A stretch of DNA of 7,341 nucleotides from contig JAAOMT010000383.1 of the NCBI GenBank assembly GCA_016748015.1, forward strand, positions 1-7,341, read 5' to 3'. Positions 17 through 7,341 of this stretch are shown here, piece by piece; position 1 is the stretch's first letter, and the number at the start of each line of letters is the position of its first letter. The DNA is from Geosiphon pyriformis uo1. Taxonomy: Eukaryota; Fungi; Glomeromycota. A program made the translations under genes and the position numbers. The notes below the pieces were generated by a model, which was not told the DNA's origin, made no database searches, and worked only from the letters and a program-made list of their open reading frames with translations.

Positions 17-371
17 TTAATTATTATAATTTTAATATTTATTAACTTAATTTATTACTTGAATTAATTATTAAATTTATTAATAAAATTAATAAAACAA
101 AAATTCTACAATAAAAAAATTGTTTTCAAAAAATAATTATTAATAACTCAATTAGAATTATATAAATTAAATCTGAAATACTCATACATAACCATATAAT
201 CTAATTACATTCGAAATCAACTCAACTTTGCTTAAAATAAAATTTATTAAAAAAGTAGAATTATGATAACAGATGGCTAAATAATAAAGCTTAACGAAAC
301 CTTTCAAAAGACTAACAGTTAAAATCTAAATAGTAATATTCTTGATGTTAAGTGCATATCTATTTTCTGAA

Positions 372-2120
372 TCATTCATTCTCCTCTTCTTCATCTTCTT
401 CGGCTTCTTCCAACCATTTAGCAAAAGGTTTAGCCTTGTTACGAATTTCTTTGTTGATTTCGGGGTCAACATAATTGACGTTGGCTGTCCTCTTGAAATC
501 TTTAGATTCGCTTTCCTCGCCAGCAATCCAGGCTTGAAATACCTCTTCTTCGATCAATTCGGCTTGATAATATTCCATCAAAATCTTGCAAATAACTTTA
601 CTGTCTAGTAATTCTGGGTACTTCTCTATCAAAATTTCTGTAGCACCTAACAGGTCTCGTTGATCATCTACATTATGGATGAACTTAAAATTGAACGAAT
701 AAGTTAGAGCCGAAAATCAAGGATTTGGCGTTAAGTATAATTTGAAACATAAATACCTTTACAATAAACTTGGCTCTCTTTTGAATTTGCTTAGAAATGG
801 TAGCATCTTTGCGGAAATGAGAATCAAAGAGACCTAAAACCAATATTTCCAACATTTTATCATTTTCCTTGGAAAGACCTAATTCTTTGATTTTTCTATA
901 AATATCCTTGGTAGGGAGACCCTTGTTTTCTTTCAACCATTCGGCAAGCTGATCGTGAGGATCTAGTTCATCAGAACTTCCGTCATCTTCTACTTCATTA
1001 TCGCCAATTACAAGGGAAAGATTGACGCCATTTTCTAAATCCTTCATACGGCGACGAACTGCTTCTGGAGATGTTTCTTCAACCCAATCATCATCATCTT
1101 CACGGTTTGGATCGATAGGAAGTTCAGCGGCTGCTGCGTTGATAGCACGAGTAAGCTCGTCTTCCGAAACTTCTTCCGAGCCTTCACCTTTAGTAGGTGT
1201 GGTAGGACTCTCAGGTAAATCACCATTACCACTTTTCTTGGTGGTGGCCTTTTTTCCCTTTTTGCTTTTTTCTTTTGGAGTGGGTGGATTTTTTAGAATA
1301 TAGGTTACCAACTTGTGACGCATATCCACTTCAGTCCTTTGACCGCAGGCTTTACAATCACGAATAACTTTTTGAGTCTTGCCAGCGATTATCTATAAGG
1401 AAAAACTTGGTTAATAACTAGGTGCTAAACGAATCTTAAAATGATTGAAGAACAAAGCATTACTGACCAAATCAGTTTCAGGATTTTGGCATCCAGCACA
1501 AAGAACAAATTTCTTGATAAAAACATCCAGAAGTTCTTGGAGTCTAGAAGCTTCATGGGCACCATTTACAATGTAACGATCATTTTTATCGTCACATTTT
1601 ACTTGAGCGCCAAGCTCACATCCAAAGAATTTAGTAGGATCTAATGAGTTGAATTTTAATTATATAAGAAGCAAAATCGTTATTATAATCTGAGGGGATG
1701 GAGAAAAATCAAGGGGTAAGGATGCTTGAAACTTACAAGTAGGTGGACGACCTAACGAACGAGCAATATCGGACATATTAGGTACGACTGTTTTAATTCC
1801 ATTTCCTTTACCTTCAATCTTGAGAAGAAAAATGTAGATCAATTATTATCAAAGATATTTAAACCGCAAGAATGTTATGGGCTCATATCTATTTTTATTT
1901 ATTTATAAATTATTCAATAAAAGCTTTTTATTCAGAATCAAGCTTTTTCCGTAAGTTTATTTGACCACTTGTTTTTATCCTGGGATCTTCAAGTTTAAAT
2001 CGATTTTTGTTAATATTCCAGAAATTTGTTCAGATCGGTCTTTACCTTGGATATAAGTTTTGGCATTTTATATCGATAAAATCTGTCCTGTTCATTGCCT
2101 CCAATGTTGAGGGTATCCAT
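372..2120 (-). CDS. TIF5: Eukaryotic translation initiation factor 5 (eIF5), 425 aa; complement(join(372..683,757..1392,1468..1640,1737..1818,2046..2120))
   Basis: Spliced by hand: exons of 75+82+173+636+312 = 1278 nt, in frame, all introns GT..AG. Protein begins [65 protein letters not shown]. Contains the FYRYKMP catalytic Arg motif, GNGIKT, a Zn ribbon (CAGC...CKAC), a Lys-rich linker, a DWEAR-like motif ([17 protein letters not shown]) and W2 acidic/aromatic boxes ([15 protein letters not shown]; [14 protein letters not shown]). Start context aatcATGG is strong (A-3, G+4). Confidence 0.97.
684..756 (-). other. eIF5 intron 4 (73 nt, phase 0)
   Basis: AAG|gtattt...ctctaac (branch point)...ttttaag|TTC links the 685..1329 ORF frame to the 372..632 ORF frame. 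Confidence 0.88.
1393..1467 (-). other. eIF5 intron 3 (75 nt, phase 0)
   Basis: TTG|gtcagt...attaac...tttttccttatag|ATA restores NPETDL-IIAGK. Confidence 0.9.
1641..1736 (-). other. eIF5 intron 2 (96 nt, phase 1)
   Basis: T|gtaagt...cattag|AT restores PPTYPTKFFG. Confidence 0.93.
1819..2045 (-). other. eIF5 intron 1 (227 nt, phase 0)
   Basis: AAG|gtaaag...tttttcttctcaag|ATT joins ISK to IEGKGNG. Confidence 0.93.
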
Positions 2121-2385
2121 GATTACAAAAAGATTTATTAATATATAGAGGATGAGGGAGGCAAGGGAGAGGGTGAAGTTTGTAGTGTTGATAGTGGCGA
2201 AGAATTTTCAAATTAGACAAGAAAGGTTGAACGATTAACGGTGTTTGGGAGTCACAGAAATTCGTCGAAGAACAAAGAGAGATCAAAAGGGAGAAATTTG
2301 GCCAAACAACAGAAGCTTTTGAGTGTAGCGGTGTTTGTGGCAGATCGGTGGTTATATGTTCGCCTGATCCAAATGGTTCTGCTTA

Positions 2386-2493
2386 TTAAGTCATTAACTT
2401 CTTGCGTTTATGTTTCTGTATTAAACGTTTTCTATAAAGATGTTGACGCCCCTGAGATAGATTTTGTCTGTTTTCAGTTGATGTACAAAACAT
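2386..2493 (-). promoter_or_regulatory. eIF5 upstream ORF (35 aa, MFCTSTENRQNLSQGRQHLYRKRLIQKHKRKKLMT) with poor-context AUG and a second in-frame poor-context AUG at 2394
   Basis: Contexts are ttcATGt (U-3, U+4) and ttaATGa (U-3). The ORF ends in tandem TAA TAA. By eye these are the only two minus-strand ATGs between 2121 and 2776. Confidence 0.75.
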
Positions 2494-2545
2494 GAAGCGT
2501 TCGGATAAACAGACAACGTGTGGTAATAGTAACTGCTAAGAGTTG

Positions 2546-2580
2546 GACGGAGGGGAGGAGAATAGGAAAAATAAAGGTGC
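2546..2580 (-). promoter_or_regulatory. CT-rich tract, probable core promoter/TSS region of eIF5
   Basis: Minus strand reads cctttatttttcctattctcctcccctcc about 55 nt upstream of the uORF. Such pyrimidine tracts commonly lie near fungal TSSs; the TSS itself cannot be determined from sequence. Confidence 0.35.
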
Positions 2581-2982
2581 TATTAACGGTTTTCTAAAAC
2601 CTTTTTACAGCACAAGAAAACAAAGGTTTATAAGCTTTTATGACGAAGATCGTAATAAAAAAAATGCTTGATAATACTAAATATATATTATGGCAAAGCT
2701 TTTTGTAGAGGTGCGGAGTTTCCCTTGGGAACTGATTTTTAGTCAAAGTGATTAGGAGCCAAGGAAAAAAAAATTACATAATCCACTAAGATTTGGTGAT
2801 TACGAGTCTTTATTATATAAAAATTCAATTATAAATATAATTTTACCACCAATTGTTTAGTACCACTAGTTTGTCATATGTTAAATGTGGCTTATGCATG
2901 TATAATACATAATTAACCATTCAGATTTAGATTTAGTATTTCAATAATCAATTAACTTTTATTTTTTTAATAAAATTATTTA

Positions 2983-2990
2983 ATCTTTTT
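2983..2990 (+). repeat. Target-site duplication copy 1 (ATCTTTTT); copy 2 at 4695-4702
   Basis: Identical 8-mer at the poly(A) junction and at the point where the ORF2-like reading frame begins. Confidence 0.7.
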
Positions 2991-4694
2991 TTTTTTTTTT
3001 TATTCACTTAATGAGTGAGGTCCAAACACTACCTAGTACTATAAATCAAAGAAATGATTTAAACTAGGCATGAATCATGTATTTTTTACACATAACCAGC
3101 CACTTGAGCTGATTAGAACAACACTACATAGCTATATAAATTGAAACCAGGTCACTTATACCTGAAAAAACAAACAAAATTTGCAAAAACCAAAATGAAC
3201 ACCAAAAGCATCAGCAATGCCAAGCAATTTGACCACTTCAGCAGAAAACCCTAAAGCCAAACCAAAAACTGAGACAAGAGCTAAACCATCAAGTGGAATC
3301 AACCCATTCATCTTTATATAAGTGTGATGCTTAATATGAACTGATCAGACATCTTTTCTAAAAGCAAAACTAAGAGAGCACACAAATTTAACAATCTTCA
3401 AACCAGCAATCTTGGGATTGTGGAAGATGGAGACAGTTTTATAAAACCAACCATTAAAAACAAAATTCTTATAAAGAGCTGTAGATATAAAGGAGTCAGA
3501 AACACAGGATAACAATAGCTGCAATACACCTGAAGAAGAATAAGAGAAACCAGAAATCACCTTTTAGGAATCCACATGAGATTTCAATAACTAACATTGA
3601 GCAGAATTATCAATTTTACAAGAGAACACATGATCTGACATCTTCACATCACCATAATATAAGCACAATATACTAGGATAAAGTCTATTATAGAGGTGCT
3701 TTTGAATGACAACTGGCAGCTGATAGTGCAAAGCTTTCATGAAATAAACACATGCATTAGCTAAGGGTCTGCTGGTAAATCTGGTGGTTATGTGCAAGTC
3801 AGGATGCCATACCAACAATAAATAGAGCCAATCAATCTCAGAAAGCAAACTGTCTGCTAAAAACTTAGAACCAAAACCAACCTCTCAGTGTGCATGACAA
3901 ACTAAATAATAAATATTACAGACAAAATGTCTGAAATTGCCAAAAACAATAATACTATCAGCTGTTACAAAGTGTTCATTTAAGCAAAAAGGAAGATACC
4001 AACCAAAGATAGAAGTGGCACCAGTGATCACATCAGCGTGCTCATTTTCTGAAATGCCAGAGTGATCTTTTATCTTATGCCAGCTATTTCCCAAATTCTT
4101 ACTGCAAATAACATTGACAATATAACAATGTTTAACCCAAAACTGATTACAAAAGTCAGAATACACCAGACCCAATTCTAACCTACAAGCTTCCAAAGCA
4201 GATTGACTATCTGAAAACAATTGAACAGAGTTCAATAAAGAGACACACTTCAAAGCCAGTGCAATAGCCTGCAACTTTGCCAAAGTAGATAACATCAAAC
4301 CTAACACATCAACATCCAAACCCAAATCAATGTCCTCAAAAAAAATAACAGCACCAGCTTTATAGCTAACTGTGCCTAGATTACTAAGAGACCTATCTGT
4401 ATATACCAACAAACTGCTAGTATCATTCTGCGAGAGATAATTACAAACAGACATAAAATTACTAAATTCAAGAATGTTCAAAAAACCAATACCACTCAAA
4501 ACCAAAGAATAAGTGAAAGAGGAACTCACACCATCAAAAAATACAACAGAAAACTTAAACCACTCAGGAACAGAACCATAGGGGTCCAATTTCTTCCAAC
4601 ACTTGAAGATGTACCAATTAAAAACAGCACCATAATGATCACAGAACTGATCCACAAAAGCAATATCATACTGTTAGAAAAAAGAAAGAAACCT
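2991..4694 (-). mobile_element. 5'-truncated non-LTR (LINE-type) retrotransposon with RNase H and CCHC domains, poly(A) tail and TSD
   Basis: T16 at 2986-3001 is the minus-strand poly(A) tail (…gtgaataAAAA). ATCTTTTT flanks both ends (2983-2990 and 4695-4702). The element contains the decayed C-terminal part of ORF2 plus a 3' UTR of about 120 nt. Confidence 0.88.
3124..4694 (-). pseudogene. Decayed ORF2 C-terminus of the LINE: RNase H followed by a CCHC zinc knuckle
   Basis: ORFs 3885..4655, 3591..3848 and 3345..3560 share one frame and are separated only by nonsense codons. Degenerate RNase H motifs: VYTDRS (YTDGS), LAKLQAIALAL (AELQAI), FSDSQSAL, WHKIKDHSGISENEHAD (KVKGHSG..GNERAD). CLYYGDVKMSDHVFSC fits Cx2Cx7Hx3C with C->Y. 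One probable 1-nt deletion near 3165-3170 precedes the terminal TAG at 3124. Confidence 0.88.
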
Positions 4695-5325
4695 ATCTTT
4701 TTATTTAAAATTTATTTATTTATTCAAATTTTAATGGCTTTGTTATTATTTTTACAGTATTATTTTGTATGTTTTACAATATTAATTTTTTTAAAAAAAT
4801 TATCTTATTAATAAAATATGTAATAATATAATTTATTTGTATTTTTTTTATTTAACATATGATTTAATTACTATTTAGGCATGCTACAACAAAACCAGAC
4901 AAAATAAACATTCAATTATGTAATATAAATGAAAGACTGATTTGATGTGACTGTAAAATTAACTAATGTGACTAATAATATTATAATAATAGTGTTTATT
5001 CATAACTTATAGACTTGTTAATTTTAATGTTTCTTTTATTATACTAAAATAAAATAAATATAAATTATAACATAATTAATATAGGATTATCTCTATATAA
5101 AAATATAAATATGAAACTAACTTACATTAAATTTACCATAAAATCCAAAAATTACAGTACTATTAGAAATATTTTAAAAAAAAAACAAAAAAAAAAATTG
5201 CTCTATATGTTTTTAAAATAAATAACACCAAAATTCTCCAGAAATATTTAAATAAAAAAAAAATCACTTATGAAATTTATCAAATAAACAAACATTAATA
5301 CTAATATATGATAAACCTAAAAAAA

Positions 5326-5363
5326 AATAAAAACTTAAAGAATAAAACTTGAAGAATAAAACT
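5326..5363 (+). repeat. Short tandem repeat, about 2.7 copies of a 14-bp unit (AATAAAACTTRAAG)
   Basis: aataaaaacttaaag|aataaaacttgaag|aataaaact. Confidence 0.55.
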
Positions 5364-5431
5364 AATTAAAAAAGATATAATTCCAGAGAAAACAAATATT
5401 TAAGATAATACTGTTTTAATATTAATTAATA

Positions 5432-6541
5432 TTAACTTGATGTGATTTTTTTTTTCAACATCTAGAATACTAGCATTGTTATTTTTGCTATTGTCAAAAT
5501 TGCTAAAATTAATTATAGAAGAGAAATTTTATCTTGGTTTTAGATTACTTTTTGCTTAGTATTAGTTAATTGTTTTTTAGTCTGCTTGATTTGTTGTCTA
5601 ACTGTAGTTAATTTTTCTTTTAACTAAATTAGTTTTTGGTCTTTATTTATTTTTCTCCAAATTTTATTATATTTTTTGAAATTGTTGAATTTTTTTGCTA
5701 TTTGTTTATTTTCTATAATACTAACTTGCTAGTTATTTAAAACAGATATGCTTTCATTTAACAATTATTATTTTTTTATTTTGTATTTATAAAAGAAAGT
5801 AAAACATAAATTATGAACTTGTTGGTATGTTTTTCTTTTTTTTTGCTTTACAAGTTTACTTACTTGTCTTAAATTACAATCAATAAAAAAGTTATGGCAA
5901 TTAATCTTAGTTTTATATTTTTTTATTAATTCTTTAAGAATTTTACCTATTTAATTTCATGTTTTTTAGTCTATTTTATTGATATTAGAAGACAATTGTG
6001 CTTTAATAAGAATAATTACATAGCCAAGAAATTTATTATTATGTAATTTAGCAATTACTTTGCTCTTTTCAGCAATAATACCATTTTTATTTGGTAAAAA
6101 AGCTTTATTAATTTCTTTAACTTGTTTAAAAGTAGCTGGTTTGTAATGTTTTCTAATTTCTGTGCTTCTTTTGTCTATTATGCTATACTTGAACACTAAT
6201 TGCAAATAAAAATGTGGTGGCATGTTTTGGTCTACTAATTTACCAATAGACATATTTAATTAATAACCTACTGGATTGTAAACTTGTTCAATCTTAGCTA
6301 TATTTTCTTTTAAGACTGATAAAATATTTGCTCATTCTTGGACAGTTAAGTTTTTTAAATCATCAACATGCCTCTTGGTAACTATCACTATATGAGCTTT
6401 GGAATTAGGTCGTGGATTAACAGAAGCAAACATTGTTCCATGATCAGAAATAAGGCCTTTAAATTGACCGTTTTCATAAAGAAAGCATTGTTTAATACAA
6501 GCCATGCAATTTTTTACCATATTATTAAATTTTACAACCAT
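5432..6541 (-). pseudogene. Decayed intron-less gene: two tandem HIT (histidine triad)-like domains, coiled coil, C-terminal hydrophobic segment and basic tail; possibly of Mollicutes endobacterial origin
   Basis: ORFs 6332..6541 and 5966..6253 are in the same frame. Read-through gives MVKNCMAC...FASVNPRPNSKAHIVIVTKRHVDDLKNLTVQE[TGA]ANILSVLKENIAKIEQVYNPVGY*LNMSIGKLVDQNMPPHFYLQLVFKY, a HIT layout (CxxC, P-x3-H-x4-K-x-H, GYN-like, HxHxH/Q remnant). The second copy reads GIIAEKSKVIAKL...LGYVII...NINKID*KT[TGA]N*IGKILKELI...FIIYVLLSF. After A-run frameshifts: QKLI*LKEKLTTVRQQIKQTKKQL, then LL*LILAILTIAKITMLVF*MLKKKITSS*. The 3' half is less certain. Confidence 0.7.
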
Positions 6542-6571
6542 GACAAATCCTTAGTCATAATTTAGTACAAT

Positions 6572-7341
6572 TTATTCAAAACCATTTTGTACTGGCTTTG
6601 GACAAATAATATCTTTAAATTTATCTCTGACAAATGCACGAATGTTTTGGTAAAGATATTCATGCCTTTTGTAATCCAAGGGAGGAGGGTTTAGTACTGG
6701 AATTGAAAAGGATTTAATTTCTTTGGTAATTTCAGAAACACTTGCTTTTCTAGTTTTCAAAAAATTAAATTCTGTATAAGCACCATTAACAACCATTTGA
6801 GCTTTGACAATTCCAGGGTTAGCTGCTTCGAAAAGAAAATGCTGATACTTTTGCATGCCATTCAATTTCTTAAAGAAAATCCCCAACACAGAGTTAAGAT
6901 CTAAATATTGAAAGCCTTTTCCATTGTCATAACACTGAGCTTTATTTAATCCAGTTGTACTCGATTTTTTCACAACTTCAACAATATGATCCACACAATC
7001 TACTGTTGTTTTTCTGTAGTTTTTTAATTAATCCAAAACTACCATCACACTTAAATTTGGTATGTCCAGGTACCATGAAATTTAATTCGATACTTTCGTA
7101 ATAACCGCAAATTACTAAATATAGGTACTGACCACCCGCATTATCACAAGTAATCTTTAGATGTTTTTCGCCTTTATTCAGTCTCTTAATTCCATTGAAT
7201 AGCATGCTCAGGGTGCCATTAGGACCTTTCCCTATTATTTCGTTCTCATCAAGAACGTAATTGATTTGTTCGCGTACTGCTTCATCTTGGATACCAAATA
7301 AATGTACTTTACGCGGACTGAGATAGTAAATTTTATTTACT
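6572..7341 (-). pseudogene. 3' part of a DDE/DDD transposase pseudogene, Sola-like / DUF7869-type; runs off the window
   Basis: Frame is open from the window edge: IYYLSPRKVHLFGIQDE...NYVLDENEIIGKGPNGTLSML...KITCDNAGGQ...ELNFMVPGHTKFKCDGSFGLIKK. A frameshift at about 7019 leads into YRKTTVDCVDHIVEVV...KYQHFLF...YLYQNIRAFVRDKFKDIICPKP. The D-N-x-x-G-Q and GHTKF-x-x-D-x-x-FG motifs are typical of this family; the usual NKN stretch after GGQ is missing (in-frame deletion). Confidence 0.72.

Follow-up and report, generated by a model that had tools for sequence, protein, structure and literature searches.

The window examined here, i.e. the whole stretch of 7,341 nucleotides analysed from the fungus Geosiphon pyriformis, most probably carries a dead transposon written in genetic code 4 (TGA read as Trp), with a passenger gene from a protein family of Mollicutes-related endobacteria (MRE), lying in the fungal nucleus. 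The passenger is a broken tandem HIT-like gene, referred to below as the pseudo-HIT gene; its position and those of its neighbours are collected in Table 1.

Table 1. Features of the window, with positions, strand and the basis of each assignment
Feature	Position	Strand	Basis
Pseudogene for tail-anchored tandem (GalT-like) pseudo-HIT protein	5435..6541	-	Frame translation; code-4 tblastn
In-frame TGA, conserved Trp site 1 (..QE-W-xDILP..)	6332..6334	-	Start of long helix, HIT half 1
In-frame TGA, conserved Trp site 2 (..D-x-E-T-W-x-x-I-G..)	5957..5959	-	Start of long helix, HIT half 2
Two adjoining TAA codons at conserved Trp-Trp pair	5765..5770	-	Alignment column of P0002 ..RWWLP..
TAA breaking the frame in the G-Y-R motif	6260..6262	-	Comparison of copies
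DUF7869 DDE transposase gene, 3' part	6572..7341	-	Weak Pfam DUF7869; identity to C702 copy
Transposon end module, about 214 bp, starting ATATAGG	5079..5292	+	Alignable with C692, C604, C702
Flank common to window and C604 copy only (about 88%)	4879..5078		Alignment
eIF5 gene, intron-split, nuclear marker	375..1842	-	Pfam W2; weak eIF-5_eIF-2B
LINE-type retroelement remnant with RNase H domain	3159..4673	-	Pfam RNase_H, E 1e-6 on 3888-4655

The reading frame and its chromosomal setting

The pseudo-HIT gene is intron-less and spans about 369 codons from its ATG (6541-6539, minus strand; these coordinates were rechecked and are exact). Translation from 6541 gives a first HIT-like half at the N-terminus and then a second one, and the frame is interrupted by 2 TGA and 10 TAA/TAG. 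With residues 4-371 of P0002, an intact bacterial homologue described below, a code-4 tblastn search returned a single HSP at the locus (L013:2064-976, i.e. window 6523-5435). The first-pass annotation, made from the sequence alone, had described an intron-less tandem-HIT frame of extreme AT-rich composition, with TGA at 6332-6334 and 5957-5959; these points held (GC 24%, GC3 17%) and the coordinates are exact.

It had also pointed to a TAAGGA hexamer at 6553-6548, 6 nt before the ATG, as a possible Shine-Dalgarno sequence. The position is exact but the proposed role failed: the hexamer occurs only in the window and in its 93% twin on contig C604, and neither the remaining nuclear copies nor seven bacterial homologues are preceded by it. 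It is a chance occurrence.

An intron-split eIF5 gene (Pfam W2, E 1e-15 on 375-632; eIF-5_eIF-2B, weak, on 1663-1842) and a LINE remnant share the 7.3-kb contig C290 with the pseudo-HIT gene, the LINE remnant being placed between eIF5 and the transposon. Positions 640-2400, on the eIF5 side, are unique to this contig. In the short-read contigs of the organism the depth is even across 2400-7341, and the word depth of the HIT region (about 200-310) is that of the unique eIF5-side flank (220-240). Neither mnmG nor gatB of MRE was found in the Geosiphon assembly. Among the Logan short contigs of the same organism no piece bridges the element end by at least 31 nt on both sides. We consider it likely that the window copy sits in a nuclear chromosome, with the reservation that the join between eIF5/LINE and the element rests on the assembly, only short contigs covering the window. 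The linkage to a true nuclear gene claimed by the first-pass annotation stands with the same reservation. Since the 4879..5078 flank is common to the window and the C604 copy only, these two loci are likely to be segmental duplicates, or else both lie inside the same older repeat.

TGA codons occupy conserved tryptophan positions

Counted over 14 nuclear copies of the gene, the 7 conserved Trp columns contain 30 TGA, 8 TGG, 7 TAA/TAG and 10 other codons, against 39 TGA in 3986 codons outside these columns (Fisher p = 1.5e-41). For the window copy alone, stops fill 6 of the 7 Trp columns (TGA, TGA, TAA, TAA, TAA, TAG) and 6 of 356 positions elsewhere (p = 2e-9). Some nuclear copies have 17-19 TGA without a single TGG, and one further stop at the most: that on contig C669 has 19 TGA, no TGG and 1 other stop in 581 codons (p = 1.2e-8), and the C601 copy is open over 407 codons apart from 2 TGA. 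Nuclear pseudo-HIT copies thus bear a code-4, TGA-at-Trp signature. The remaining stops resemble C-to-T or G-to-A changes, e.g. CGA to TGA/TAA and CAA to TAA. For alignments and trees we used code-4 translations with X at TAA/TAG; in database searches the pieces between stops were used separately.

Both TGA sites of the window correspond to Trp in the bacterial homologues, encoded by TGA in P0003 and by TGG in P0002, so that the earlier proposal of Trp-like positions in both repeats held. The TGA at site 1 is common to the window, C604, C702, C692 and C657 copies. At site 2 C702 and C580 carry TGA like the window, whereas C692 and C592 carry TGG. At the Trp-Trp pair both codons are TGA in P0002, and the pair is TGA-TGG in L141, a metagenome contig from rhizosphere/soil; the simplest reading of the window's TAA-TAA, and a likely one, is that TGA decayed to TAA. 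In the G-Y-R motif C702 has CGA and C692 has TAT at the codon concerned; TAA is confined to the window and C604 and is a later nonsense change. The first-pass annotation had warned that the neighbouring LINE has TGA too. This caveat is outweighed by the enrichment at Trp columns, by selection and by the bacterial homologues.

Intact homologues stand among bacterial genes

Bacterial homologues of the nuclear copies exist. P0002 and P0003 are respectively 42% and 38% identical to the C601 copy; they are intact and stand on contigs of GC 32-33%, beside either an ABC transporter gene and nusB or gatB and mnmG. These housekeeping genes read TGA as sense (gatB 4 TGA and no TGG, mnmG 5 and none, also nusB and the ABC transporter). 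A third homologue, P0015, adjoins higB, pemK and HU, and the genes on all three contigs use TGA as sense without internal TAA/TAG. Homologues stand on contigs of up to 125 kb and in an MRE chromosome of 615 kb, and their neighbours include a phi29-type capsid gene. Among named sequences, the mnmG from a homologue contig comes closest (65-72% identity) to bacterial entries from four assemblies of arbuscular mycorrhizal fungi (Ambispora, Gigaspora, Funneliformis and Cetraspora). A more distant member keeping HxHxH is annotated in the complete MRE genome CP125275.1 (WNE40889.1), and a match with TGA inside was obtained in 5 of 5 genomes of the GTDB family of CP125275.1.

These relatives were not easily reached. 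A word-indexed protein search with the N-terminal piece of the C601 copy matched only Geosiphon's own annotation, and the homologues needed an exhaustive search; the family motifs found no relative among GTDB species genomes, the distant paralogue P0011 alone leading to the MRE genome. An exhaustive search of 1.84 billion representatives, and one of the Geosiphon genome, gave no fungal orthologue in the standard code. The family therefore likely consists of intact genes with multiple paralogues in the chromosomes of MRE of mycorrhizal fungi, bearing in mind that Geosiphon's own MRE is not among the genomes compared. The MRE origin put forward by the first-pass annotation is supported, in that the best homologues are bacterial with TGA as Trp and are not vertically inherited fungal genes.

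A predicted GalT-like pseudo-enzyme

The Pfam HIT profile (PF01230) of the canonical hydrolases Hint and Fhit matches the first half of family members with 22-58 bits (P0002 21.9, P0003 25.1, C601 copy 27, P0015 46.5, P0011 58.4), whereas the first 69 residues of the window copy stay below the cut-off (E 0.0017, 19.4 bits for a cut-off of 21.5). The triad region reads H-F-Y-L-Q-L-V in the window, H-F-Q-L-H-L-V in the C601 copy and H-F-Y-A-R-I-V in P0002. The first triad has degenerated to H-x-Y/Q-x-R/Q/H and, unlike that of Hint and Fhit, is without the nucleophilic His in the middle; no His is present in the second half, and HxHxH is kept only in the deep paralogues P0011 and P0015. The HIT identity first assigned to the gene must accordingly be corrected: as inferred from sequence alone, the members of the window family are HIT proteins by descent, not by chemistry (pseudo-enzymes). 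Since the triads are degenerate, nucleotidyl transfer is unlikely.

Fold tests were run on P0002 and not on the broken window copy. Its AlphaFold model (pLDDT 80.7) shows two halves, each with a beta-sheet and a long helix, and the two TGA sites of the window map to the start of the long helix, one per half. In the PDB the top Foldseek matches of this model were 6k5z, 1zwj, 1hxq, 4qvu and 4i5w (E 2e-8 to 5e-4, probability 1.0), the best ones being GalT, ADP-glucose phosphorylase, DUF4931 and Apa2. These tandem-HIT proteins (HIT branch III) likewise have two HIT-like alpha/beta halves per chain, and their N-terminal CxxC pair is kept in the pseudo-HIT family. Disparities nevertheless appear: sequence identity is 10-16% and TM-scores only 0.35-0.46, and the pseudo-HIT family has in addition a long coiled helix, a transmembrane anchor at the C-terminus and, in some members, an N-terminal multi-CxxC extension. 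The model thus predicts a GalT-like tandem pseudo-HIT protein with a C-terminal membrane anchor. Its role in the bacterium can only be inferred; a non-catalytic, nucleotide-binding, host-facing surface protein is a possibility that we hold with low confidence.

The gene is linked to a DUF7869 transposase

The stop codon of the transposase lies 31 nt upstream of the pseudo-HIT ATG. The transposase remnant has a frameshift near 6980-6994 and is truncated by the contig end; it is 76% identical in protein to the C702 copy (row C290:6990-7340), and Pfam DUF7869, weak on the remnant, reaches 6e-14 on that copy. The same order, transposase then HIT, recurs in C604, C702, C592, C601, L141 and the P0214 contig, and the two genes are convergent in C657, C659, C790 and L099. 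A DUF7869 copy adjoins 9 of the roughly 15 pseudo-HIT copies. The linkage of the pseudo-HIT gene to the transposase is thus established. On L141 the arrangement is near-intact, both genes being on the same strand; its HIT ORF (343 codons) has 5 TGA, 2 TGG, no other stop and one frameshift near the start, and is 77% identical in nucleotides to C702.

In the Geosiphon genome the transposase family is matched at least 84 times, mostly by copies with one conserved TGA, and some of these copies are intact under code 4 (602-612 codons). Intact transposase ORFs of 580-612 codons have 2-6 TGA each, and both the transposase and the ORFs downstream of it have TGA where Trp is expected. The end module of the window contains a short inward-reading ORF, aligns with C692 and C604, and recurs, inverted, on the far flank of the C702 transposase; in many soil elements a module 72-84% identical stands at either end, in opposite orientations. 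It may be a long terminal inverted repeat, although the other end of the window's element lies beyond the contig and no TSD can be read. DUF7869-type (Sola-like) eukaryotic DDE transposons with passengers likewise have a DUF7869 DDE transposase, many copies per genome, a terminal module of about 210 bp inverted at either end, and extra ORFs between transposase and end. They differ from the Geosiphon element in the latter's use of TGA at Trp positions; to our knowledge no nuclear transposon with this feature has been described.

The compartment of the element is less clear. No transposase was found on the contigs with bacterial housekeeping genes examined, and none by protein or Pfam search in five GTDB MRE genomes (Mortierellaceae hosts), this last search having no positive control and being uninformative; the transposase has accordingly not been shown to reside in MRE. 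TGG-only ORFs flank several soil and nuclear elements whose own reading frames are intact under code 4, which leaves undecided the compartment where the element is active. Pfam assigned no family to the TGG-only ORFs of soil elements and C601, and scanning for tRNA genes gave none in the window or at 17 element loci.

Nuclear copies are numerous, polyphyletic and decaying

At least 15 pseudo-HIT copies, including that of the window, are present in Geosiphon pyriformis; the 14 others lie within contigs of 0.19-2.3 Mb, adjoining LINE remnants. In the tree the nuclear copies interleave with code-4 homologues, the starred branches requiring at least 4 label changes among 33 rows, and the AU test rejects a single clade comprising the 14 nuclear copies (p = 0.0028, delta lnL 54.5). 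The nuclear copies are thus polyphyletic. It should be noted that the group submitted to the AU test was chosen after viewing a first tree, and that some metagenome rows are contigs below 2 kb of unknown compartment. The deep branches with intact triads fall in MRE, Mortierellaceae MRE among them.

Between the window/C604, C692 and C702 lineages, all with TGA at site 1, dN/dS is 0.22-0.37 (dS about 0.9); for the window against C604 the value is about 2 (dS 0.05). The C604 sister locus (L029) consists of Ns at about 3.9-7.2 kb, and this part was excluded. That the window copy has decayed is clear. The likely course is that the lineages split under purifying selection with TGA in frame, and that the window copy afterwards decayed neutrally.

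Proposed explanation and alternatives

In the explanation that we favour, positions 5079-7341 would be the right-hand part of a dead TIR-type DNA transposon copy, with a DUF7869 transposase and a downstream passenger gene written in the Mollicutes code. The pseudo-HIT gene would have evolved where UGA is Trp and entered Geosiphon chromosomes more than once, at least partly carried by the transposon. Nuclear translation would end at the first UGA, after 69 codons, leaving the copy dead on arrival, to drift toward AT and gain TAA/TAG stops. The first-pass annotation had also proposed death on arrival through the code difference, which is supported; its lone endobacterium-to-host transfer is corrected to one of at least 15 copies, resulting from several entries, as cargo of a code-4 DUF7869 transposon. 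That the transfer ran from MRE to nucleus and that the transposon was its vehicle is inferred, as is the bacterial role of the protein. A bolder reading, which we hold to be possible but less likely than not, is a two-way shuttle between MRE and fungal nucleus, the proteins being made in the bacterium: pseudo-HIT would be an accessory gene of an endobacterial-code transposon that keeps intact copies in fungal chromosomes and in soil worldwide. If so, the transposon would be the physical shuttle for the long-known gene exchange between the partners, the window copy being one footprint.

The most serious rival is a resident nuclear transposon whose UGA would be read as Trp in the fungus, by a suppressor tRNA or programmed read-through, with HIT as its own accessory gene and the MRE copies secondary. 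It can draw on the intact code-4 transposases of 602-612 codons in Geosiphon chromosomes, on the number of transposase copies, on the soil elements flanked by TGG-only ORFs, on dN/dS below 1 among transposase-linked HIT lineages, and on the failure to match the transposase in five MRE genomes, for what a search without positive control is worth. It is nevertheless unlikely: the tRNA scan was negative, HIT homologues stand among bacterial housekeeping genes without any transposase, the deep intact-triad branches are in MRE including those of Mortierellaceae, and no mechanism for element-specific UGA decoding in a fungus is known to us. Moreover, TGG-only genes are readable in code 4, and such cargo therefore suits a bacterial home, while the window copy is dead in every code. 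An assembly artefact, i.e. C290 as a chimera of fungal DNA with an MRE or other code-4 molecule, or contaminating bacterial DNA, is very unlikely. C290 is only 7.3 kb long, MRE contigs are reported inside Glomeromycotina assemblies (PMC10507103, PMC11423566), and the data available include no long read or long contig across 4700-5100. But the 14 other copies lie inside large contigs beside LINE remnants, MRE mnmG and gatB are missing from the assembly, the HIT region equals the eIF5-side flank in word depth, and decay as heavy as GC3 17% and 10 TAA/TAG is unlike a live bacterial gene.

Two other explanations are practically ruled out. One takes the locus for a normal fungal gene or pseudogene whose TGG codons became TGA by AT-biased G-to-A decay; it would agree with the AT-rich genome, with the C-to-T or G-to-A look of the other stops and with the TGA codons of the neighbouring LINE. 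It does not account for copies in which TGA occurs 17-19 times, TGG is lacking and other stops number one at most, for dN/dS of 0.2-0.4 between lineages already sharing TGA, for intact homologues using TGA on bacterial contigs, or for the lack of a standard-code fungal orthologue in the representatives and the genome searched. A mitochondrial origin (NUMT), the code-4 signal coming from a mitochondrial mobile element, deserves mention. Fungal mitochondria also read UGA as Trp. The code-4 signature alone cannot separate mitochondria from Mollicutes, and the compartment of the transposase is unproven; but the neighbours of the homologues (gatB, mnmG, nusB, ABC transporter, higB, pemK, HU, phi29-type capsid) are absent from mitochondrial genomes.

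Comparison with known transfers

The explanation by a code-4 transposon with an MRE-family passenger places the window beside NUMTs, NUPTs and Wolbachia-to-arthropod transfers, in which DNA of an intracellular partner is likewise found in host chromosomes, mostly non-functional and in neutral decay; as for NUMTs from code-4 mitochondria, the code mismatch makes the inserted DNA untranslatable. In contrast to NUMTs and Wolbachia inserts, the Geosiphon material is not random bulk, two housekeeping genes of donor type (mnmG, gatB) being absent from the nucleus, and the gene accompanies a DDE transposon that uses the donor's code, with many copies and several entries.

Gene transfer from fungus to MRE is documented (PMC10507103, PMC5982333). 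The bacterial genes of Rhizophagus are stated to have sources other than the known MRE (PMC5982333), and a 2026 review mentions transfer into the host genome merely as a late step that may occur (PMC13315312). We found no report of MRE-to-fungus transfer in the literature searched. The window locus and its 14 sister copies provide sequence-level evidence for this direction, the differing genetic code acting as a built-in tag of origin and the link to a code-4 transposon suggesting a concrete vehicle. They also bring to light an MRE protein family not described before, predicted to be tail-anchored and GalT-like, whose triads are dead and which shows many paralogues and mosaic recombination, a pattern expected of a host-facing surface protein. 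Finally, code-4 nuclear copies can lead astray both the annotation of fungal genes and the screening for MRE contamination; G9A89_007683, entered in the annotation as a truncated fungal protein, is one such copy.

The tandem-HIT gene of contig C290

The Geosiphon assembly comprises 128 Mb in 792 contigs, one of which, C290 (7341 bp), is the entire window. On the minus strand the HIT frame runs through a CxxC pair, a HIT-like half, a first TGA, a TAA, a degenerate triad (H-F-Y-L-Q-L-V), a second HIT-like half and a second TGA, and ends with a lysine-rich helix and what is left of a hydrophobic tail. It contains 2 TGA and 10 TAA/TAG over 363 aligned codons, with a GC content of 24% (GC3 17%). 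The locus is a dead pseudogene. The first-pass annotation had seen here, from the sequence alone, a bacterial-type tandem-HIT gene broken by TGA, and this observation is confirmed. Every one of its coordinates is correct, and the two TGA that it placed at the same position of both repeats do correspond between the halves: when a homologue is modelled, each falls at the start of the long helix. The hexamer that it read as Shine-Dalgarno-like did not hold, this motif being due to chance.

Features of contig C290 and their positions
Feature	Position	Strand	Remarks
eIF5 gene			intron-split; W2 domain, E 1e-15; same contig as HIT gene
Last eIF5 exon (W2) and 3' flank	200-640		repeated elsewhere (see text)
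Sequence unique within the assembly	640-2400		
LINE RNase H remnant			same contig as HIT gene
End module	5079-5292		214 bp; conserved element end
Short inward-reading ORF of end module	5111-5290	+	about 58 codons; broken
HIT-like pseudogene	ATG at 6541 to about 5435	-	frame translation
Double TAA	5770-5765	-	
TGA, second half	5959-5957	-	
TAA	6262-6260	-	
TGA, first half	6334-6332	-	
DUF7869 DDE transposase, 3' part	6572-7341	-	cut by contig end; same strand as and directly upstream of HIT gene

TGA at tryptophan positions of the nuclear copies

The Geosiphon genome contains at least 15 copies of the HIT gene, with identities from 93% down to about 36%. Two of them are decisive in showing that the TGA pattern exceeds chance. 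The C669 copy is open for 436 + 144 codons with 19 TGA, 0 TGG and 1 other stop (probability of TGA in 19 of 20 stops 1.2e-8, equal-stop null), and the C601 copy is a 407-codon frame in which 2 TGA are the only stops; it has 4 TGG, and its C-terminus forms a clear membrane anchor.

We aligned 14 nuclear copies with ten homologues, and seven columns are Trp in the close homologues. At these columns the nuclear copies have TGA 30 times, TGG 8, TAA/TAG 7 and other codons 10, against 39 TGA in 3986 codons elsewhere (Fisher p = 1.5e-41). The window gene reads TGA, TGA, TAA, TAA, TGG, TAA and TAG, these positions taking 6 of its 12 stops (p = 2e-9); its double TAA corresponds to a Trp-Trp pair spelled with TGA in homologues. 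In the C669 copy (loci L027 and L015, C669:924-926 kb) all Trp are TGA across roughly 580 codons. An N-terminal extension with several CxxC pairs marks one subfamily, seen in the C669, C659 and C790 copies; the bacterial protein P0003 has this extension too.

Bacterial homologues

The N-terminal piece of the C601 copy, used in an exhaustive profile-free search against 1.84 billion representatives, returned 69 matches. Because of in-frame TGA, the full-length homologues are not reproduced by table-11 translation of their contigs. P0002 (372 aa, 42% identical to the query) has 4 TGA and 4 TGG, P0015 has 9 and 3, and P0003 (500 aa) has 14 and 3, with TGA at both of the sites where the first-pass annotation proposed to look for Trp. 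Their neighbours are bacterial genes with TGA as sense and no internal TAA/TAG, in DNA of 32-33% GC: an ABC transporter and nusB in one setting, gatB (4 TGA, 0 TGG) and mnmG (5 and 0) in another, and in a third higB, pemK, HU and a gene for an LRR/HET protein containing 30 TGA. Over its first 335 residues, this MnmG shares 65-72% identity with entries from Ambispora, Gigaspora, Funneliformis and Cetraspora assemblies, but only about 51% with Erysipelotrichales and other Bacilli. Thus the gatB/mnmG contig belongs to the endobacterial lineage of mycorrhizal fungi.

WNE40889.1, a more distant member whose HxHxH triad is intact, is encoded on the complete chromosome CP125275.1 of the Mollicutes-related endobacterium (MRE) of Benniella AD185 (PMC10507103), and all 5 genomes of its GTDB family have a match containing TGA. 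One soil contig carries two paralogues in tandem, adjoining pemK. Given the bacterial contigs, the matches in MRE genomes and the tandem paralogues, the HIT family is a multi-paralogue MRE gene family; its deepest branches in the tree, with working triads, are bacterial. Three genes downstream of the gene for P0014, a HIT-containing paralogue of 863 residues, there is a gene for a major capsid protein of phi29 type (L142, a 125-kb code-4 contig of JGI 3300073945), a neighbourhood that could be prophage-like.

Fold and likely kind of protein

Pfam HIT scores above cut-off for the C601 copy and the bacterial members, and just under it for the window piece. In the AlphaFold model of P0002 (28-row alignment; pLDDT 80.7, pTM 0.73), each of the two halves combines a beta-sheet with a helix; a helix of 40 residues and a transmembrane helix at the terminus are also predicted. 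Among PDB entries, single-chain double-HIT enzymes match it best (E 2e-8 to 5e-4), the fold resembling GalT and uridylyltransferases, Arabidopsis ADP-glucose phosphorylase, DUF4931 and yeast Apa2; single-domain HIT proteins rank behind. In the window's subfamily the nucleophilic middle His is replaced by Tyr or Gln and the second half lacks His, and for this reason we read it as non-catalytic. It may be a tail-anchored, probably nucleotide-binding protein of a wall-less bacterium free in the fungal cytoplasm, a function that is inferred only.

Association with a code-4 transposon

The order transposase stop, about 30-60 nt, HIT start on one strand recurs in C604, C702 and C592, and is inferred for C601 from its upstream 160 bp (97.5% identical). 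At C604 the region expected to contain the body of the transposase, upstream of the HIT copy (L029, C604:342000-351999, positions about 3917-7190), reads N and did not enter the comparison. Transposase and HIT gene are convergent in C657, C659 and C790, and more loosely in C371. In all, 9 of about 15 HIT copies are linked to a transposase. The transposase itself has at least 84 matches across the 128 Mb of the genome, and most of these have exactly one conserved TGA within the 148-residue probe. Geosiphon transposases intact under code 4 have 602-612 codons with 3-6 TGA and are followed by TGA-rich ORFs. The intact ones at L136 (C633), L137 (C648) and L138 (C702:48500-55000), followed by ORFs of 215-312 codons with several TGA and 0-1 TGG, might be young or maintained elements.

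A metagenome scan gave 181 transposase relatives, 80 of which were retrieved for reading. On the longer contigs their code-4 ORFs reach about 580-604 codons with up to 5 TGA each; the median is only 508 codons because many contigs cut the gene. In these soil elements the ORFs upstream of the transposase use TGG only and the downstream ones are TGA-rich. Upstream ORFs of up to 939 codons with 0 TGA and 7-11 TGG occur at L063, L074, L103, L058, L116 and L125, and four large upstream or flanking soil ORFs had no match in Pfam. At L116 and L125 the end module lies between the TGG-only ORFs and the transposase, so these ORFs may be flank rather than cargo.

A minority of elements have the HIT gene in the downstream accessory slot: L099 (convergent), the P0214 contig (DUF7869, then HIT) and the rhizosphere contig L141. 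On L141 the transposase end is followed by a HIT ORF of 343 codons with 5 TGA, 2 TGG, no other stop and one frameshift near the start, 77% identical to the C702 copy over 1670 bp. This is in effect a nearly intact counterpart of the dead arrangement in the window.

The end module recurs, inverted, beyond the far side of the C702 transposase, and many soil elements carry it at one end or the other. No target-site duplication is readable for the window element because its other end lies beyond the contig. The short ORF of this module is intact in C702; a better copy (L037:6861-7037, minus strand) exists, and 72-84% nucleotide identity is kept across soil elements.

Selection, decay and number of transfers

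In a tree of 33 rows the nuclear copies are interspersed among code-4 homologues, the starred branches requiring at least 4 label changes. The window groups with C604, C692 and C702 (support 100/99), and C669 is sister to a metagenome sequence (99/94). When the set was cut to 14 nuclear copies plus 11 longer homologues, mostly full-length code-4 proteins, a single clade of nuclear copies is rejected (AU p = 0.0028), this group having been chosen after the first tree was known.

Between window/C604, C692 and C702, dN/dS is 0.22-0.37 at dS about 0.9 (code 4) and all have TGA at the first site; the lineages therefore split while translation of the gene still read TGA as sense. For the window against C604, dN/dS is about 2 at dS 0.05, in keeping with neutral, AT-driven decay. 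These two share 200 bp past the element end and are thus probably a duplicate made in the nucleus.

Probable nuclear location

The eIF5 gene and the LINE remnant on C290 speak for a nuclear setting. The sister HIT copies are embedded in contigs of 0.19-2.3 Mb, with retroelement remnants next to them. Searches of the assembly for MRE-type mnmG and gatB returned only weak exon-like matches to the fungus's own homologues. This indicates that the assembly has no MRE contigs and no bulk MRE pseudogenes, and argues for an element-borne route over random DNA uptake. The comparison of read depth suggested by the first-pass annotation was made with short-read contigs of the same organism: word depth is even over 2400-7341 (gene about 200-310, unique flank 220-240), and these contigs leave the junction unbridged. 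Nuclear linkage on C290 is therefore probable, without being independently proven. The last eIF5 exon and its flank have 97-99% repeats, twice on C454 and once at C604:374251-374441, about 24 kb from the sister HIT copy, the remaining eIF5 being unique to C290; contig overlap or a recent segmental duplication could explain this.

Alternative explanations

Decay of TGG to TGA in a fungal gene is all but ruled out, since it is contradicted by the TGA-only copies, the selection signal and the bacterial homologues. A mitochondrial origin is very improbable, as it does not fit the bacterial gene neighbours. We cannot disprove an assembly chimera for C290 taken alone, but this seems unlikely for the family. 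An element resident in the nucleus with UGA decoded as Trp is also unlikely: no tRNA gene is present on the elements, and a TGG-only cargo gene is fully readable in code 4. It cannot be excluded for the transposon, which was not found in five MRE genomes from Mortierellaceae hosts (without a positive control).

The interpretation of the first-pass annotation, MRE DNA in the nucleus, is thus supported and extended. The locus is probably a clean footprint, tagged by its genetic code, of DNA passing from endobacterium to nucleus in connection with a mobile element; direction and vehicle are inferred. Fungus-to-MRE transfer and MRE contamination of fungal assemblies have been described (PMC10507103, PMC11423566), bacterial genes of Rhizophagus are stated not to come from known MRE (PMC5982333), and mobile elements are abundant in MRE genomes (PMC4916391). 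The literature searched yielded no account of the pseudo-HIT family, of a code-4 DUF7869 transposon or of fungal chromosomes carrying MRE-coded DNA. New here are the finding that the passenger gene has its home on bacterial chromosomes, the fold of its product, the statistics on Trp columns, the pattern of selection then decay, the polyphyly of the nuclear copies and the near-intact counterpart of the window arrangement.

Mosaic copies and contig ends

C601 and L141 are 97.5% identical over the upstream 160 bp, which run from the transposase end to the HIT start, and their final 316 bp agree at 88.6%; their HIT cores are unrelated and unalignable at the DNA level. Recombination is known in MRE (PMC4916391); this mosaic is compatible with it and may reflect cassette-like behaviour in the HIT family. 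The last 706 bp of C601 (L018, C601:367770-370018) match the first 706 bp of C643 (L030, C643:1-9000) in reverse complement at 100% identity, and include the 5' part of the best HIT copy with 146 bp upstream. Past these 706 bp C643 diverges, and its HIT gene is truncated there. One repeat, probably the transposase, forms the end of both contigs.
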